Shown here: positions 34,152 through 49,924 of the stretch, piece after piece | Layout of the letters: each line of letters begins with the position of its first letter | How positions within the stretch are numbered: the stretch's first letter is position 1 | Source of the DNA: Adineta vaga | Lineage: Eukaryota; Animalia; Rotifera | Direction of reading: 5' to 3' | NCBI GenBank assembly: GCA_021613535.1 | Contig: CP075495.1 | Span: 2,790,001-2,854,000 of the forward strand | DNA: 64,000 nt | Position numbers and translations under genes: made by a program | The notes under the pieces: model-generated | Databases searched by the model: none | The model's input: the letters and a program-made list of their open reading frames with translations, nothing else | Told to the model about the DNA's origin: nothing

Positions 34152-34728
34152 TCATTTTCTCTCTTCAAACATATTTTTTGAAAGATAGAAATCATCTTCG
34201 GTTTTAAATTGTATACAAAAATTTTCATATTCAATAAAACTAACAAAAAGAAATACACATGAATTGAAAGAATTGATCAATCAAAAAATAATCACCCATC
34301 TTCATCAATTGGCAAATCTTTCATCATTTCATTCATTTCTTGTTCGGACAATGGTTCACCTAAAGACATCATGGCCGTTTTGAATGTTTCAACGCTAATC
34401 AAACCTATCGAATGTATTTATCTTCGAAAATTTCATACAAAAAACAAAATCTTCTTTTACCATAACGATTTTTATCGAATGTAACGAAGGCATTTTCAAT
34501 TTGTTCATAGGAATATTTCGTACATGAAAGTTTTGACATAATATCAGTAAACCAGAAATAATCGATAGTTTTATTATGAAGAAATTCATCATCAAGTCTT
34601 TCAAGATCATGCTCCGTTGGTGTATGACCTAATGCACGGATTAAAAAATGTACATCATCTACATTGATAACACCTGAATTTTCTTCATCAAGAAAGAGAA
34701 AAGCTTCTTTATATCGAATGTTATCCAT
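34152..34728 (-). CDS. Calmodulin/myosin light chain-like EF-hand protein with degenerate sites
   Basis: Three exons: YKEAFLFLDEENSGVI...IRALGHTPTE...IENAFVTFDKNRYG|LISVETFKTAMMSLGEPLSEQEMNEMMKDLPIDEDG|FIEYENF...ERK*. Confidence 0.85.
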
Positions 34729-35127: not shown

Positions 35128-38100
35128 ATGACATCAAATAATACTGAAGAAAATGCAATATCAATAGTTTTCAGTCCAAACAGTATTTTTGTTTCTTCGA
35201 CTTCACTTACACGTCCTCCGACAACACCTACAAATACAACTAATACATACGAATCATTAATTGCCAACATGCTTGATGCTGAACTTGATTCGGATCCTCA
35301 AATGTCTGATAGTGAACTTTCATGGCAATCGGTAACAGATGTTGATAGTTTAACAGCAACAAATCATTGGCGTGGTTGGAAACAACAAACGACAATATCC
35401 TCTACAACAATAATAAATTCAAATAATTCCTTACAATCTACCAATTCAACATCGATATGTAATTCTTCTTTAACAACATTCAATGAAGGTTTGTCTGAAT
35501 TCAAATAATCTTTTCTATTTTAATCATTTGTTTCTAATTTTTTTTCTTCTATAGATCGTATTCCTACATTAGTTGATTTAGCAGCTAAAACAATTGCTCG
35601 ACATATACCATTTGAATTAGTTGAACGATATAAGCAACCTGAACAACCTGTGCCTGAAAATTTACAATTAAAAATCGCTTTTTGGAGTTTTCCTGATGGA
35701 ATTGAAGATATTCGGTATAATAACAAAATTAAATTCTTTGCTTTTCGTAAACCATTCTATTTCCATTTTAGTTTATATACTTGTGTAGCTAATGGTAGTA
35801 CTGATGAATTTATTAAAGCTGAAGCATTACAACAAGCTAAAGCTGTACAAAATATGTTACAAATTGGTTTCCATTTAAGTTCACAAGTTTATGAAATTAA
35901 CTCCATAAATAATTCGGCAAAATGCACGACACAATTTTATCATGTATCGATTATATTTGATCGGAAAAAGATCACTTCATGTCATTGTACATGTACTAAT
36001 TCAAGTTCATGGTGTTCACATATTGTTGCTGTTTGTCTTTGTCGTATAGCACAAGTAAGATTATTGATGAATTGATTTTTCAATTGAAATTTTCTAAATT
36101 TTTTAGCCACAAAATTGTTGTCTACGAGCACCAGTATCGGAATCATTATCACGTTTAAAAATTGATCAATTACGGTATGATAGAGAGATATTTTTTCAAA
36201 TCAATCTTTATTCTATTTTTTTGTCTTTTCAGAAAATTTGCCCAATATCTTATATGGGAAATTCCTCAACAAGTATGTCTATTTCATGAGAGATATGAAT
36301 GAAATTCTTTAATGATTTTTATTTCTTAGTTTTTACCAAAAGCTCAAAGTTTACTCGATGAATTACTGAGCGATAAACCAACGAATGTAAATATGTTACA
36401 AGGAGCACCGGTAAATAAAAAAGTGATTTTGTTTTTTATATTTATATTTTTGTTCGTATTTTCCAGGATCCAACAGCTGGTGGTTTATCTTCAGATATAT
36501 CCGTTTGGTTTCTTGATGATACGAGTTTGCAAGAAAATATTAATAAAACTCTTCATCGATTTTGTCAACCTACACCACAAGTTGTTGGGTACGAGAATAA
36601 ATTCTAACATCAAGTGCATAGAGTTAAAAGAACCATTTTGACATATACTTATGCACTTAGTGTCAATGTTTTCTTTACATAATTAGATAAGATGGGACAC
36701 ATTAGCGACTTCTCTCTTCGATATATACTATTCCAATCTGAATGTTCTCCTCTTGTATTCTTTTAGTGACGTCACCTATTTAACTAGTCCACCAATCTTA
36801 GCTACCACTGAATATTCGAATCTGTTACGTCCATTACGTGGTCGTGAACCAGAAGGTATGTGGAATTTATTACAAATTGTCCGTGAAATGCTTGCTCGAC
36901 ATGATCTCAATGGTACTCAATTACTTGATATTCTTACACGACAATGTCTCTCTCAAGAACAAGTAAAATCTTTTTTTTTCTTCCTGTCTTACAAATCATA
37001 TCTAATCTTTCTCTATTAGATAATTCAATGGTGGTTTACAACGAAAGTTTCAAATGTTTACAATGAACGTGGAACAAATGGTTTGAAACCACATAATACT
37101 TCTTTAGTTCAACAAGCAAGTTCTGCTTTGTGTGATGAAATTGTTCAAATTTGGCGTTTAATCGCTTTGAATCCTCGTTTGAATAATGAAGAGCGAAATG
37201 CTATCTATATGAAATTATGTATATGGCATTTATCCATTATTGAACGTATATGTAAACAAAAAACAACGACAACAAATATTTCGACGACTACAAATGGTGT
37301 TTATACATCACCGACAATAAATTCTACAAATGATCGTACATTAAATCAGAAACGACGTGATATTGATATATTTCCAGGATTTTTACCAGCGATTGAAGTT
37401 TGTCAAATTGATTGGAATCATTGTTCCTATTTTCCAAATACAATTGAAGTCAATGATAATGATAATGATAATGAACGTTTATGGTCGGAATATGTTCGTT
37501 CCTATGATGAATCATTAACTGATGGTTATTCAAAATTAAATACTAATACAAACTTTAATTTCAATACTCAACAACGAATTTTAACTCAACCAATTTCAAC
37601 GATTACCGAAGAAGTTTCTTCGAACATACCAGATGATGAAGTAGTGAATAATCACGAAGAAAAATGTCAAGATATCGATAGTGGAGAAGAATCATGCGGC
37701 GCTGGAAATGGTGATCAACAATCATCATCAAATAGTAGTGATGAATGTAAAATTTATTTTACTGATCGACAATCGACAGTAAAATCTTCAAAGACTACAA
37801 ATACAACAGCACCAGCAGTAACAACAAATTGCGAACCATACGTTTTTAAAACATTGAAGATCATTAATGATTCACTACAGGTATAATGAACGAATATTTA
37901 TCTATGCGAACAAAAAGAAAGAATTGATGTTAATTAATTTAGATTGCCTTTGTTCGTTGTGAAGCATTACGAATTCATGGATATCATAAGGAAGTTTTCA
38001 AACTTGCGAAAGAATTAGCAAATCATATGCTTGAAAATGAAGAAAATCTGACATCTTCTCAAAGTTTGTTCATCGTTTGACTATTAATCATCTAGAAATG

Positions 38101-41100
38101 TATATTTTTTTTCTCCTTTTAGCTTATCTTGATGTTCATATATCCGATTATGCCACATCTCCAATAGTTCGTTGTGCTTTTCTTTGTACTATTTTAAATG
38201 AATCATCGGAATATCAACAACTGGCATTTCGTATTGGTTTACTCGGCTTAGAAATCTGTCGTATGCCAGCAACAACGAAAGCTCTCGAAGTTCGTTTACT
38301 CAATTGTGAACAAGAAATTTGTCAAGAATTGAAAAAAATCACACTCGGACAAAATGAAATTGATATTTTACGACAACGTGCTGAACATCTATGTGCACGC
38401 CTCTTGAGTTCACGTGATGATGGCATTCTATTACCACTTAGTTTAGCAACATATATCTTTGAAACATTGCGATCACTTAGTTTATATCGAATGAATTTAA
38501 ATTCTAATTCAACTGCGTCATTATCACAGAATTTTTCGATTCTATCATCAATTGAAAATAATAATCAACAGAATGGATCCGATGAATTATTAGCATTTGA
38601 TACAGCAATTTGTGCACTTGGAGCGAAATGTTATATTTCAGAAGGTAAATTTTCTTTTCAATGCAATACCAACAAAAGAAGAATTAATCGATTTGTTTTT
38701 CCTTCTAGCTCAAAATCCGATATTATGCGAAGGTATTCGTCGGCAACGTAGTGACTTAGCACTTAATTTACTCACATTATATAAAGATGATCAAGGACGA
38801 TTAATACAAATACTCGATAAATTACTTGATCGTGATATACATGTTTTATTTAAAAATTCGAATGTTAATCCTTTTAATGTTGGAACAAAAAAAGCTAATC
38901 AAACTTCTGCGACATCTCAACAAACAAACACTAATTCTCCAACATTATCAACGCGTTCACAACATAAGAAATCTACTACAACAGCTGCTGCTGCTGCTAC
39001 GGCGGCGTCGAATGCGAATGGTGAACCATTGACAGAAATTGATAGTTCAGGTTTAGATGAAAGTGAAGGAGAAAATTTTGATCAAAAAGCATGGGAAGCG
39101 AAATTTCGTTGTTTAAACTTAAAAACGAGTTCAAAACGAATATCCAATGGTAAATATACGAGATTGATTTCTATTTACAGAGTTGAATTAAATTTTCTTT
39201 CCCTTTAGGTTTTACTAGTATTGATAGTAGCGCACCGGAAACAAATTCAAGTGATAATTCACCAACTGTTTTACGTCGTAATATTCGTATGTCATCATCG
39301 AAAGCCAATGCTGATTCAGAAAGTGATAGTGAACGAGATACGGTACAACGAAATGGTAAATAATCAAATATAAAATTGTATAAAAAACCTTTATCTTCAT
39401 TTCATTTTTCTACTATTTCTAGTTCGCGGTGAATCTCCGTTACGTATGGATATGAATTTATCATCAACAGAACTTCTTTCGTCTCCATCTATTCATTTAA
39501 CAGCTTCAAGAAATACTTCAACTATACCAAAATCTCTTTCTCTTCAACAGCAATCTTCCGCAAGTTCGCATACTTTGAAACCTCCTAAAGGTCATATGAA
39601 TTCGTCGAATGGCAAAAATCGTTCACCATGTGCTCCTAATCAACCATCAGAAGCTTTATGTCATTTTATGTTTGAATTAGCAAAACTCTTGTACAACGTG
39701 CTGGTGGAACAACATCAACATCATTATTTGTTGGTCCAACACATAATTATCCTCCTCCACATCGAAATTTACATTTATGTGCAATTACGATTGCACTCTA
39801 TGCATTAGGTGTAAATAATCATGTACAAACCAATTGGATGATTCGAACATATTCAAGTTTAGTTTCTTGGATAACATCGACAGCTACAGATATTGGTTTA
39901 CAAGCAATATTACTCTTAATTGAATGTTGGGAAGGACAATTAACACCACCCGAATGTGCTGCTATAGCAGATCGTGCTTCACGTTCACGTGATAATGCTG
40001 TTGTACGTACAGCTGCTGAATTAGCTTTATCAACATTAAAATATGCGCATGCACTCAATGCTGCCGAAATACGTCAAGCATTAGCACAATGTAAAGAACA
40101 AAGTATAGATATGCTTGAACGTGCTTTAACAACCATTGAAAATGCGACACGTGATGGTAATCTTGTATTTATCGATATTCTTTTTGAAGTTGCTAAACGT
40201 TGGTATGAAATGTATTATGAACGAACCGGAGATTCATTAAATAGTGATGATGATGCAGCTGTTGTTGATATACGACAACCATTTGATAGTAATTTAACAG
40301 CAACAAATCCGATTGAATTACATTGGACACATGCAAATTCAGGAAATTCATCATCAAACACACCATCACCATCTCCTATGCTATATGCTACGAATAATCA
40401 GAGTGGAAATTTTCAGACACCATTTCCACCACATCCTTCTAATCATTTTAATACTCATGCTTATATGATACAAGCACAACATGGTCCACCGCCTCCACCA
40501 CCATCAATGCATCATCATCAATTAGGAAATTTTCATCAACAAGTACAATATCAACAAATCATTCCAATTCAATATTCTACACAACCTCAACAACAACAAC
40601 AGCAACAACAACAGCAACAACCACATTTTGCTTTTCACACAGGTCCGCCAAATAATTTTCATCCCCATCCGCATCTTCCTCGTCATCCACAACCGCCGCA
40701 ACAAATGCCCAATGCTATACTTGTTAGTCCTGGCAATTTTCCCACAGGTTATGCTGTTCATCATGCGACACAAAATCCAAATCAACAAATGTACTCTCCA
40801 AATCTAAATCCCCAACAACAATCATTTTATGCTGTCCGACAAATACCACTAGTAGTTTCTCCACCAACTGAATCAAATATTTCACCGTCTTCATCAACAA
40901 CTACAGCAGCAATAGTTGCACAACAACAACAACCAACTGCTGTTAGTCCCAGTACAACACCATCGGCTGAGGTAAAAATTATTCAAGCTTTTATTTTTCT
41001 AATGATTTTATTTTAGCAACAACAACAACAACAGCAACAGCCGGATCCAAGTCATCGTCAATATTTACTTAATGCTTTTCGTGTTGGTATGTTAGCAATG

Positions 41101-41676
41101 AATACACTTGCATTAGAACGAGCTCGTCAAAATCATGCACATATGGAACGTCGTGGTGAACAAAATCATCCTACACCACGCTATGGTGAAGATGTCAAAT
41201 GGCTTCTAAAAATTGCATTAAAACTAGGTAAAATCATCTTCTTTTCTTTTCGTTTAAACAATATTCTCTATCCAATCTTATTTTCTTTAGGTAATGCTGA
41301 ATTACAAGAATTTGTTACAACAGCAACAGCAGTTATTGTTAATCCATACTTATTACATAGTGCATTTAATATCTATCATGTTTCACAAAATAATCCTAAT
41401 GGTTCATCATCAAATCAAATGCTTCGTTTACCATTTGTTCAATCATTAATGCAAAAGTGTCTTCATGCTTATACTCGTTGTGTACACAATAAAATGGGAC
41501 ATATGACAACAAATAATGATATCGACGAATTGACATCATTAATGAAACATGCACGTTCGGCATTTTTATTCATGGGTAATACAAGTGATTATCAAGGTTT
41601 AATGAATTTCGTAAAAACATCGAAAAAATGCAAGAAAGATGTTTATCCACGACTTTGGCAAGCTATTCAAAATTAG
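35128..41676 (+). CDS. ZSWIM8: ZSWIM8 (Dorado/EBAX-1) cullin-RING substrate receptor; apparent 1-nt deletion near 39685
   Basis: About 16 exons. BC-box-like IPTLVDLAAKTIARHIPFELVE, QLKIAFWSFP...DIRLYTCVANGS, SWIM finger ITSCHCTC...WCSHIVAVCLCRI, LRPLRGREPEGMWNLL, IDSSAPETNSSDNSP, PNQPSEA, RTYSSLVSWIT, AFRVGMLAM, YGEDVKWLL. Start could be 35014. Confidence 0.93.
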
Positions 41677-42154: not shown

Positions 42155-44386
42155 ATGAAGACGATGATTCGTTCACGTTTATTTTCAATAAATCAACCTG
42201 TTTTTCAACGAACTATTGTTACAAAAACGAAGAATATTATCAATAATGAAAAGGAACAACAAGGAAATATGACAGAAGAATATCTTGCATCTTCTCTATC
42301 ACTTCAGCCTCCTCAACGTCCATTAACACAACAATTTACTCATCAAGTAACGAATCAAGTTCCACCATTGAATCGTATAGATTTGTATGAAACTGATTTA
42401 GCATTACGTGAATTTGTTACTGATGCAAATTGTGGACAAATCAAACAGATGGCTATTGAATTAGGTACTTTTCATTGGTTTGAACAAGGACATCGAGCTA
42501 ATCGATATGTACCAACATTACATCAATTTGATCGTTATGGACAACGTATTGATGAAGTTCAATTTCATCCAGCTTATCACGATCTTATGCATATGGGCAT
42601 GAGATATGGTGTATGTTTTATTTTCTCTTGTACAATATTGTTGATATTTTTTCAAACATATCCAATATAGGTACATTCTGTTGCTTGGGAATCTTTATCT
42701 GAAGAGAAAACTGAGATTAATGCATATGGACATTTACAACATGCGGTAAGGAATTGATTTAAATTAGAAGTTTGTATGAATTGTTTTGATTTAGGCAGCA
42801 CTTTACATATTGAGTCATATTGAAGCTGGTGTTGGTTGTCCACTATCAATGACTTATGCTGGTTATCCTGTACTTCATCGATATTTACATAAAACTGGTT
42901 CAGAATTAACAAATAGCTTTCCATTAGATAAAGTGTTATCTCGAAAATATGATCGACGATGTTTACCAGCAACTTTTAAATCTGGATTAACTATTGGTTT
43001 GTTTATTTCTTATTATTTTCGAATATGTCGATTTCTTCTTTTAGGAATGGCAATGACAGAAAAACAAGGTGGTAGTGATGTTCGTGCAAATACAACTAAA
43101 GCTTATTGTGATAATGCTAATGAAAAACGCTATATTCTTATCGGTCATAAATGGTTTTGTTCTGCTCCAATGTGTGATGGTTTTCTTGTTCTTGCACATA
43201 TTCATAATGATGATACGTCTACTAAACCATCGTCAAGTGGGATACCATCATGTTTTTTCGTTCCACGATGGTTACCCAATGGTGAACGAAATCCATTCTA
43301 TATTCAACGATTAAAAGACAAACTTGGTAATCGTTCAAATGCATCGAGTGAAATTGAATTCAATAATACTCAAGGTGTACGTAAAACAAAAGTTCTTTCA
43401 TTCAAAATTTAATTCCAAAAATCACTTTCTAGTGGTTGTTAGGCAAAGAACATGATGGTGTTAAAACTATTATTGAAATGGTACATGGTACACGTTTAGA
43501 TAGTGCAGTTGGTAGTGCAGGATTGATCCGACAAGGATTAGTACAAGTAGAAAGGAATCTTTTCATACTTTTAAAGAAATTGATTCCTAGTTTTTGTCTG
43601 AATCGTAGGCTACTTGGCATGCTCGACATCGAAAAGCATTTGGTCGATTACTAATCGATCAACCACTAATGAAACAAGTCTTAGTTGATTTACTTCTTGA
43701 ATCAGAAGCTGCTACAGCACTTGTCATGTATGTTGCTACACTTTTCGATGCGACATACAATAAATCGAATTCAACTAATATAAATGAAACTAAAGCATTT
43801 GCTCGAATTGCAACAGCTATAGCAAAATTTTGGATTTGTAAACGAACACCTGAATCAGTAGCCGAAGCATTAGAATGTCTTGGTGGAGCTGGATTTGTTG
43901 AAGAATCAAATATGCCACGTATCTATCGTGAAGCACCTCTAAATAGCATATGGTATTGTAACAATATACATTGAATTTATTCCATATTTCACTTTTTTGT
44001 TTAGGGAAGGTAGTGGCAATGTTATGTGTCTTGATATATTACGTGCAATGAAAAAGTCACCTGAATCACTTCAAGCCTATTTTTCATTTATGAAAGAAAC
44101 AAAAGGTGCCAATAAGCATTTAGATGCAGCATTAGAACGTGTGAAAAAAAGTTTACTAACAGAAAATTTTTCGAATGAAATTCTTGAACGTCATGCTCGA
44201 ACATTAACTACGCAATTAGCTTTGTGTTTACAAGCTAGTTTATTAATTCGTCGTTTTCCAGAAGCAATGAGTAATGCATTTTGTTCATCACGTCTTGGAC
44301 CTAATCGTGGTTCTATATTTGGTGATTTACCAATGGATATTGATACAGATACACTTGTGAAAAGATTACCTTTTGGTTCTATGTAA
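42155..44386 (+). CDS. aidB: AidB-like acyl-CoA dehydrogenase (bacterial type) with N-terminal presequence
   Basis: Exons 42155-42610, 42671-42745, 42795-42996, 43045-43376, 43433-43546, 43609-43952, 44005-44386. AidB motifs THQVTNQVPPL, FDRYGQRIDEVQFHPAYHDLM, EAGVGCPLSMTYA, IGMAMTEKQGGSDV, GHKWFCSAPMCD, QRLKDKLGNRSNASSEIEF, TRLD, YREAPLNSIWEGSGNVMCLD. Confidence 0.9.
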
Positions 44387-48369: not shown

Positions 48370-48952
48370 ATTCGATCAAAATTCTTCGACAACATCGTAT
48401 TTTTTTGTTTTCATTCTTCTGCAAAGTGTGTGCAAACCTTTTCTTTTAAGTTTAAAAAGTTTGTTTTGGTATGATTTCTTTTCTTTTTCTAAAATAAAAC
48501 AAATATCTAACCACTTTGAATAATAATAATAGAAAAATATATCCTTTGAAGAAGAGAAAAAAAGATAATGCATCGTAATAACATTGTGAAGCGTGTCATT
48601 TTTATTTCTCTATATTTGAAATGACGCATCAACGTTAAGTGAAACCTTTAATTTATCTTTGCAATTCAATCAATTTGCTGAATAAATTCACTTGTACAAC
48701 ACGTAAATATTTTACAGTTCTGAATGTGTCCTTAATGTTTAAGTAGAAAATAAGTAGACGAAAAAAGGACGGAAAAGAAAAGAGAGTGATTCTTTATTTT
48801 TTTTCCTTTGCTGATACTTGACATCGTCAGAAATGAAACATTAACAAACAGTTCGCCGAATTATTAAATTGCCGGAAAGTGCTTAAGTGAATTGAAATGA
48901 ATTTTGATAGTTTGTGTTGAATATATCCATTAGAAACAAGAAAAAACAAACA

Positions 48953-49924
48953 ATGACCATTCTACCATTTCTCGATGTTAAAGCTACGCCAATATGTTCA
49001 GTGGAATCTCCTCGACTGGCACGAACAAGATCAGTACCTCGTTCATTAGAATCCACTGATCATTCGATTCCATCATTGAAACCTTCATCCTCATTACATT
49101 TATCCAATTCATTTGCAACGACACGTACACCGAAGATTAAAATTGTTGCTCGAACAGATGAACAATTAAAGAAATTACCACATGCAAAAACAGCCCGAGC
49201 ACAAGCACATAATCCCATATGGAAACCTTTTGTTCGTGAACTACCTGATTATGATTATTTATGGGAACCTGTACATCGAGAAGATATTCGACATCAATAT
49301 GACTCTTATGTAGCTCCACAACATATTAATGCTGGTCGTCCGGACGAACCATATCGAATGTCATCATTCTTTGAAACTCAAGATAGACATTATTATAATT
49401 ATAAACGAGTACAAGCGATGCAACAACGACAAAGAAATAGAGAACATATGCAATATACAATCTATCCATATGCTCAAGCTGAAGAACGTGAGATGTACAA
49501 GTAAATAATGATTCTTATCTTTGGTCATTCTTGTAATACTTGATTGTATCTGTTCTATTTAGGAAAAAAATTCGAACAACACTGAAAGAACAAATGGAAG
49601 AAAAGGCTCAAGCTGAAAAACATCAATTAGATCTAAAGAATCGTTCGACTAGTCTAGTTTTAGAACAAGATCGTCAATTTCGTGAAGAAGAAAAACAACG
49701 AAATGATGCACGAACTCAATTATTAGCCAAAGTTTCTTTGAAAAATAAAGAAGTTAGTAACAAATGTTTTTTTTTCTCAAATCTATACAATACAATAAAT
49801 TGATTTATTTTAGTTAATGAATAATAGAAGAGAATATGATCAATGGAATCGTGTACATCAATGGCATGTTGAACGAGCTATGTTAGCTGATAGTCCTATT
49901 AATTGGAGTAAAACATTGACTTAA
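48953..49924 (+). CDS. Uncharacterised coiled-coil protein ending ...SPINWSKTLT
   Basis: Exons 48953-49500, 49563-49753, 49814-49924 join in frame at GT-AG introns; C-terminal half is E/K/Q/R-rich and helical. Confidence 0.75.

Follow-up and report, generated by a model that had tools for sequence, protein, structure and literature searches.

Escherichia coli AidB (PDB 3DJL/3U33; NCBIfam NF008594), which has been proposed to act on DNA, is built of four parts: an AidB_N domain, the middle and helical domains of the acyl-CoA dehydrogenases (ACADs) and an extra C-terminal domain. Its residue Glu425, which is preceded by Trp424, occupies the position of the ACAD catalytic base. The ACADs of animals are typically mitochondrial. 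Bdelloid rotifers are a textbook case of the use of foreign genes, so that one more bacterial gene in a bdelloid genome would be unsurprising; many of their foreign genes combine a bacterial affinity with short introns, host-like base composition, paired copies and metazoan neighbours. A literature search found no paper mentioning both AidB and bdelloids, and none on eukaryotic AidB-type genes. The current report concerns an AidB-type gene at positions 42155-44386 (plus strand) of a stretch of 64,000 nucleotides (nt) from the bdelloid Adineta vaga, referred to here as the window, which represents positions 2,790,001-2,854,000 of contig 2 (CP075495.1) in a 100.8-Mb assembly of six contigs. With moderate confidence, we read this locus as a functional domesticated foreign gene that would have originated in an old transfer of a bacterial AidB gene, been adapted to its host and been supplied with a presequence-like leader, for which a mitochondrial location of the product serves as our working model.

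The seven exons of the gene (Table 1), when joined by their coordinates, make up a complete, split coding sequence of 1905 nt, i.e. 634 codons and a TAA stop, with no internal stop codons. Since an in-frame TAG lies two codons 5' of the ATG, translation can begin no earlier than Met1 within exon 1. An initial annotation, drawn from the sequence alone, had reported six canonical short introns and had quoted four AidB motifs; both descriptions agree with our analysis, which placed all four motifs in frame translations of the locus and found six introns of 48-62 nt with GT-AG borders throughout and a content of G and C residues (GC) of 0.21-0.29. The family, structure and database searches of the window protein were run exon by exon, and the joined model was used only in local BLAST comparisons, alignments, trees and estimates of the ratio of nonsynonymous to synonymous substitution rates (dN/dS).

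The exons collectively recover the complete layout of E. coli AidB. In Pfam, exon 1 matches AidB_N (PF18158; E 1e-25) over residues 67-152 and profile positions 1-90, and this domain, which ends in exon 3, replaces the N-terminal domain of canonical ACADs; the latter, Acyl-CoA_dh_N (PF02771), had no match in a Pfam scan of any exon of the window gene. Exon 4 matches Acyl-CoA_dh_M (PF02770; E 6e-17) and exon 6 matches Acyl-CoA_dh_1 (PF00441; E 1e-17). These Pfam matches greatly exceed what chance would yield. Among solved structures, the top match was E. coli AidB for exon 1 (residues 5-93 of AidB; E 1e-11) and again for exon 7 (3DJL residues 425-521; E 3e-6). The exon 7 alignment opens at a Glu that is the equivalent of AidB Glu425, and the split codon preceding it specifies Trp; the Trp-Glu pair is thus kept in the rotifer protein. 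NF008594, the equivalog family of E. coli AidB, was the top family for each exon tested, with 54.1 bits for exon 1, 115.7 for exon 4, 102.4 for exon 6 and 48.9 for exon 7 (profile positions 425-517). By these sequence comparisons the window protein is a member of the AidB family, a non-equivalog of E. coli AidB, and is not ACDH-11-like. The rotifer gene differs from its E. coli counterpart in being eukaryotic, in having six introns and in specifying 57 extra N-terminal residues.

Membership in the ACDH-11/ACAD10-11 group of enzymes was considered and rejected. The rotifer protein shares the general acyl-CoA dehydrogenase fold of the helical domain with Caenorhabditis elegans ACDH-11 (4Y9J), but the similarity is weak (5e-6 for exon 6, versus 5e-27 and 5e-21 for the AidB-type chains 5EZ3 and 3DJL), no exon matches PF02771 and the N-terminal part is AidB_N by Pfam. 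The initial annotation had raised the prospect of a grouping with metazoan ACDH-11-like enzymes; no such grouping was seen, ACDH-11 being remote and no metazoan relative appearing among the matches listed.

For wider relationships, exon 1 was scanned against 1.84 billion representative proteins, and word-index searches were carried out with the protein of Capsaspora owczarzaki (a member of the Filasterea), with an alignment of Capsaspora and rotifer exon pieces (a profile that was dominated by Capsaspora) and with P0300, the closest bacterial relative. Among the matches listed for exon 1, the five fragments with >55% identity are bdelloid-like open reading frames (ORFs) of single exons, and below them come mostly short unnamed fragments; the full-length proteins listed are those of Capsaspora, a marine TARA scaffold and bacteria. 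The word-index searches led to bacteria of many phyla, and the only named eukaryotes among the matches listed were Capsaspora and a second filasterean, Pigoraptor chileana. For the exon and relative queries, neither the best 150 representatives nor the lists of the best 120 matches, which consist mostly of unnamed fragments, contained a metazoan protein. Local BLAST comparisons gave the rotifer model identities of 49-52% with many bacterial proteins over ~580 residues (525-578 bits) and of 45% with the Capsaspora protein (460 bits).

The phylogenetic placement of the gene was examined in quick trees of 97, 45 and 55 rows and in a more careful maximum-likelihood (ML) tree of 55 rows and 556 columns, built under LG+C20 with posterior mean site frequencies (PMSF); the quick trees agree with the careful one. 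In the latter, three bdelloid sequences (100/100) are sister to an 11-member group of uncultured bacteria (98/88), and the joint clade has a support of 99/98. Members of the AidB-family group to which the bdelloid proteins are thus linked (P0300, P0372-P0389 and P0436) share ~50-52% of their residues with the rotifer protein over the core and have the same Pfam architecture, but they are 554-579 residues long without a long leader, are intronless and lie in bacterial operon contexts. P0300 itself is carried on a 25.6-kb contig, where it adjoins a PqiA, MlaD-family and ABC_trans_aux gene set of the kind that is typical of Gram-negative bacteria, and it is therefore regarded as bacterial. The initial annotation had called the rotifer gene's signatures proteobacterial. 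The term is apt in a loose sense only: one cluster member of the sister group carries the label of a Deltaproteobacteria metagenome-assembled genome, but the group as a whole is uncultured and the clade of AidB proteins from the Enterobacterales is distant from the rotifer sequences. In our judgment, these relationships are best read as a transfer from bacteria into the bdelloid stem, and this reading is probably the correct one.

The AidB-type proteins of Filasterea might instead suggest that the gene is an ancient mitochondrial gene of holozoan or eukaryotic descent, ultimately of bacterial ancestry, that was inherited vertically and lost from nearly all animals but the bdelloids. The proteins of Capsaspora (XP_004363464.2) and Pigoraptor (EP01137_P003200; our P0207) are likewise eukaryotic members of the AidB family, 589-638 residues in length, with presequence-like leads of their own of 29-43 residues; unnamed fragments from other sources also exist that have leader-like N-termini. 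In the approximately unbiased (AU) tests of the 45- and 55-row sets, trees in which bdelloids and Filasterea were forced together gave p values of 0.138 and 0.071, respectively, which do not reject the monophyly of the two. The same constrained trees are, however, 19.2 and 32.9 log-likelihood units worse than the unconstrained ones, and in the careful ML tree the two groups are parted by two strong branches, the 99/98 branch of the bdelloids with their bacterial sister group and a 100/96 branch that subtends a different clade of 17 rows, within which Capsaspora and Pigoraptor fall together (98/81). The rotifer protein is nearer to many bacterial proteins than to that of Capsaspora, and each of the leader-bearing fragments has bacterial sequences as its nearest relatives, with the bdelloids ranking near the bottom of its matches. 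The Capsaspora gene (L037:3001-5038, KE346364.1) has core residues 15-638 in one exon and a single intron of ~120 nt in its leader region, and hence shares no intron position with the bdelloid genes. Vertical descent would additionally require that the gene be lost in essentially all other sampled animal lineages. We consider this explanation improbable, and the joint clade on which it depends is disfavoured although it is not formally rejected. The filasterean clade may itself stem from an independent bacterial acquisition within Filasterea.

Some of the other leader-bearing homologues deserve brief description. Two AidB_N ORF fragments from one study (L040:1387-1947 and L041:674-1450, from the Logan sets SRR32456857 and SRR32456846) have N-termini of the classic presequence-like type and are closest to bacterial proteins, not to bdelloids; they may come from further eukaryotic carriers of the AidB family. 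The TARA scaffold (L039:1-5006, ERZ28654239) encodes an AidB-family protein of 635 residues on a very long branch, with a lead of 47 residues, and the gene adjoins a carboxyltransferase gene that was called in three pieces, which suggests introns. The source of this scaffold is probably a marine eukaryote.

Returning to transfer into the bdelloid stem, the surroundings and composition of the window gene are those of a settled resident of the rotifer genome. Its GC content equals that of its surroundings (~30% in the window), and the GC content at its third codon positions (GC3), 0.13, is host-like. A homologue of the metazoan gene ZSWIM8 (with SWIM, TPR_ZSWIM8 and ZSWIM4-8_C matches) ends ~480 bp upstream. 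A scan of the genome for AidB_N detected exactly two loci, one being the window gene and the other on contig 5 (C5; 14,500,653-14,502,992, minus strand), which we modelled by coordinates as 628 codons with a GC3 of 0.16. The C5 copy has the same six intron positions as the window gene, and its middle domain is interrupted by one further canonical intron, the seventh. An ORF downstream of the window gene (48914-49501, plus strand) likewise has a copy that lies ~4 kb downstream of the C5 gene and is oriented in the same way, and the two AidB-type genes therefore lie within a collinear duplicated block. A third bdelloid version of the gene was found on a 483-kb bdelloid-like contig (L038) of an assembly in the European Nucleotide Archive (ENA), where the locus has a GC content of 0.49; this orthologue of 633 codons (GC3 0.58) matches the C5 copy in all seven intron positions and groups with it at 97/87 in the careful ML tree. 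From the shared introns and this grouping it follows that the gene is older than the duplication and also older than the split of the bdelloid lineages sampled here. The seventh intron, in phase 2, measures 112 nt in the C5 copy (L009:2878-2989, minus strand) and 51 nt in L038 (7008-7058) and is missing from the window copy; either it was lost from the contig 2 copy or it was gained in the contig 5 lineage after the duplication.

The two Adineta copies are 76% identical, and in the conserved body of the protein their divergence (dN 0.135, dS 0.705; ratio ~0.19) reveals purifying selection. The maintenance of the Trp-Glu pair and of all four domains under such selection argues for an active flavoenzyme and not a relic. 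Bacterial contamination, an assembly artefact or a decaying pseudogene could be invoked only on the strength of the bacterial affinity of the protein; the six canonical introns, the GC3 value, the intact frame and the dN/dS ratio all speak against such origins, as do the ZSWIM8 neighbour on a chromosome-scale contig and the collinear second copy. We assign this explanation a negligible probability, and contamination in particular is rejected on the basis of the introns, the neighbours and the second copy. The initial annotation had viewed the gene as an old and domesticated horizontal acquisition. The tree supports the bacterial origin and the introns common to the bdelloid copies its age, while the host-like codon composition, purifying selection, metazoan neighbour and collinear copy support domestication. 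In these hallmarks the gene matches other domesticated foreign genes of bdelloids, from which it differs in having a conserved added N-terminal leader of the targeting-like kind.

The Adineta genome contains at least nine loci for the canonical ACAD N-terminal domain, and the AidB-type enzyme consequently adds to the normal set of ACADs and does not replace it. In three instances, a match to Acyl-CoA_dh_N lies in an unusually long uninterrupted frame (C2:16154895-16155212, C5:2601681-2602019 and C6:9282363-9282695, in frames of 769, 415 and 309 residues, respectively), and these intron-poor genes on contigs 2, 5 and 6 might be further foreign acquisitions.

The window protein also differs from its bacterial relatives in its N-terminal extension. 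The Thr with which the core begins, in the motif THQVTNQ, is residue 62 of the window protein and residue 5 of E. coli AidB. When the 55 rows of the tree were aligned with MAFFT, the three bdelloid proteins had 61, 59 and 60 residues ahead of this Thr, compared with a median of 11 residues for 46 bacterial proteins; Capsaspora had 29, Pigoraptor 43 and the TARA protein 47. The approximately 60 extra residues of the initial annotation thus amount to 57 by comparison with E. coli AidB and to ~50 by comparison with the bacterial median, and the Arg/Lys/Ser/Thr-rich, acid-free start that it described is also present: the first 31 residues contain no acidic residue, the first of these occurring at position 32, and include 6 Arg+Lys and 6 Ser+Thr. 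Across the three bdelloid proteins, the lead of 28-31 residues is free of Asp and Glu; 4-7 of its residues are Arg or Lys, 5-6 are Ser or Thr and 11-12 are hydrophobic. Its helical hydrophobic moment, a crude measure computed over 11-residue windows, has a maximum of 0.52-0.82. The acidic linker that follows has no counterpart in the bacterial relatives, and its length is kept in all three sequences. Two short motifs recur in all three bdelloids: Gln-Arg-Thr-(Ile/Val/Leu)-Val-Thr, at about residue 20, and Pro-Pro-(Arg/Gln)-Arg-Pro, directly before the core. Identity within the extension is 34-52% and its dN/dS is ~0.35, values that fit a targeting peptide selected for its composition and not for its exact sequence. 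Since the extension and the start of AidB_N occupy one exon, the leader would have arisen through an extension of the reading frame and not through exon shuffling.

From the composition and conservation of the lead, we lean toward mitochondrial targeting of the window protein, as the initial annotation had also proposed; the roles that it put forward, in the protection of mitochondrial DNA or in acyl-CoA catabolism, are candidate functions. A domesticated transfer whose extension is something other than a mitochondrial presequence, the protein residing in the cytosol, the nucleus or elsewhere (where it might, for example, act on nuclear DNA), appears rather unlikely, but several traits of the protein lend themselves to it. 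At ~60 residues the extension is long, the acidic and polar character of its second half departs from that of a simple presequence, and its low identity and higher dN/dS can be cited in this connection as well. The fourth domain (last 120 residues) has a slightly positive net charge of +3 to +4 in the bdelloids whereas the bacterial relatives are net negative, a difference that might faintly suggest DNA binding. What favours the mitochondrion is that the acid-free, basic and hydroxylated lead was kept in three of three bdelloids in spite of sequence turnover and a large shift in GC content, that mitochondria are the usual location of animal ACADs, and that the filasterean homologues have leads of classic appearance.

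Several observations weigh against the reading of the locus as a bacterial gene that was domesticated and retargeted to mitochondria, in addition to the AU results cited above. The stem branch that leads to the bdelloids has a length of 0.77, which is long, and the bacterial relatives listed are at most ~52% identical, so that the donor is placed only loosely. Neither bdelloids nor monogononts were represented by full-length proteins among the matches listed, most of which are unnamed metagenomic fragments. The splicing of the gene is predicted from its open frames and GT-AG borders and from their conservation. The NF008594 scores add up to ~321 bits for exons 1, 4, 6 and 7 (with exons 2, 3 and 5 unscored), which is below the 545-bit cut-off, as is also the 506-bit score of P0300; the function of E. 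coli AidB is therefore not simply transferable to the rotifer protein. Finally, the maximal helical hydrophobic moment of the window lead is moderate (0.57).

The sequence of events that we envision would begin with the passage of a gene for an AidB-family, flavin adenine dinucleotide (FAD)-dependent, acyl-CoA-dehydrogenase-like enzyme from a Gram-negative bacterium to the bdelloid lineage, before the genome duplication of bdelloids and before the split of the bdelloid lineages sampled here. The gene would then have gained spliceosomal introns and adopted the base composition of its host, and its first exon would have been lengthened upstream by ~60 codons, the first ~30 of which are presequence-like in make-up. 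In our working model, the product would be imported into mitochondria and function there as a flavin-dependent enzyme of the acyl-CoA dehydrogenase type beside the canonical ACAD set.

Table 1. Predicted features of the AidB-type gene of Adineta vaga (window positions)
Feature	Position	Strand	Description
Acid-free lead, putative mitochondrial presequence	42155..42247	+	begins at the start codon; 31 residues, Arg/Lys/Ser/Thr-rich
Polar acidic linker, ~30 residues	42248..42337	+	joins the lead to the conserved core of AidB
Exon 1	42155-42610	+	152 codons; N-terminal extension and first part of AidB_N
Intron 1	42611-42670	+	60 nt, GT-AG, phase 0; position common to the C5 copy and L038
Exon 2	42671-42745	+	25 codons
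Intron 2	42746-42794	+	49 nt, GT-AG, phase 0
Exon 3	42795-42996	+	end of AidB_N; Pfam E 8e-8, profile positions 109-155
Intron 3	42997-43044	+	48 nt, GT-AG, phase 1
Exon 4	43045-43376	+	acyl-CoA dehydrogenase middle domain; Acyl-CoA_dh_M E 6e-17
Intron 4	43377-43432	+	56 nt, GT-AG, phase 0
Exon 5	43433-43546	+	38 codons
Intron 5	43547-43608	+	62 nt, GT-AG, phase 0
Exon 6	43609-43952	+	ACAD C-terminal helical domain; 3' end within the Trp codon of the Trp-Glu pair
Intron 6	43953-44004	+	52 nt, GT-AG, phase 2; interrupts the Trp codon (TG/G)
Exon 7	44005-44386	+	Glu at the catalytic position, AidB-type fourth domain, TAA stop

As regards the neighbours of the gene, the ZSWIM8 homologue is a large, multi-exon gene (window 35650-41676, plus strand), and its C-terminal exon occurs as a single copy in the genome, so that its duplicate appears to have been lost. 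Upstream of ZSWIM8, on the minus strand, lies an exon ORF of the EF-hand (calmodulin-like) type (34405-34728), and EF-hand ORFs also occur in L038 (8523-9250, minus strand), downstream of the AidB-type gene. The ORF at 48914-49501 predicts 196 residues without a Pfam match; its collinear copy on contig 5 (C5:14496236-14496802, minus strand) is 60% identical to it.

A broader possibility, which we regard as tentative and on balance doubtful, is that the Holozoa acquired AidB genes from different bacteria on two or more occasions, one of them in the bdelloid stem and another in Filasterea, and that the genes were each time given a mitochondrial leader. If true, such repeated capture would suggest that an AidB-type enzyme is recurrently of selective use in mitochondria. 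That Filasterea have apparently come by the family independently does hint at its repeated recruitment, and together with the conserved targeting-like leader of the bdelloid proteins it adds to the interest of the gene. For bdelloids, the use of a mitochondrial AidB-type enzyme, if there is one, could lie in the detoxification of damaged or unusual acyl-CoA compounds or in the protection of mitochondrial DNA during desiccation and rehydration.

The value of the locus lies in part in its being a clean case of a transferred gene, intact, subject to purifying selection, dating from before the genome duplication and provided with acquired introns that have been conserved, and its conserved added leader suggests that a bacterial enzyme was retargeted to an organelle. 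Were the mitochondrial location and the activity of the protein shown, it would become an example of a transferred gene that gained its targeting signal through the extension of a first exon. The AidB family is poorly understood biochemically, and the bdelloid protein would then also offer an animal system for the study of AidB-type function.

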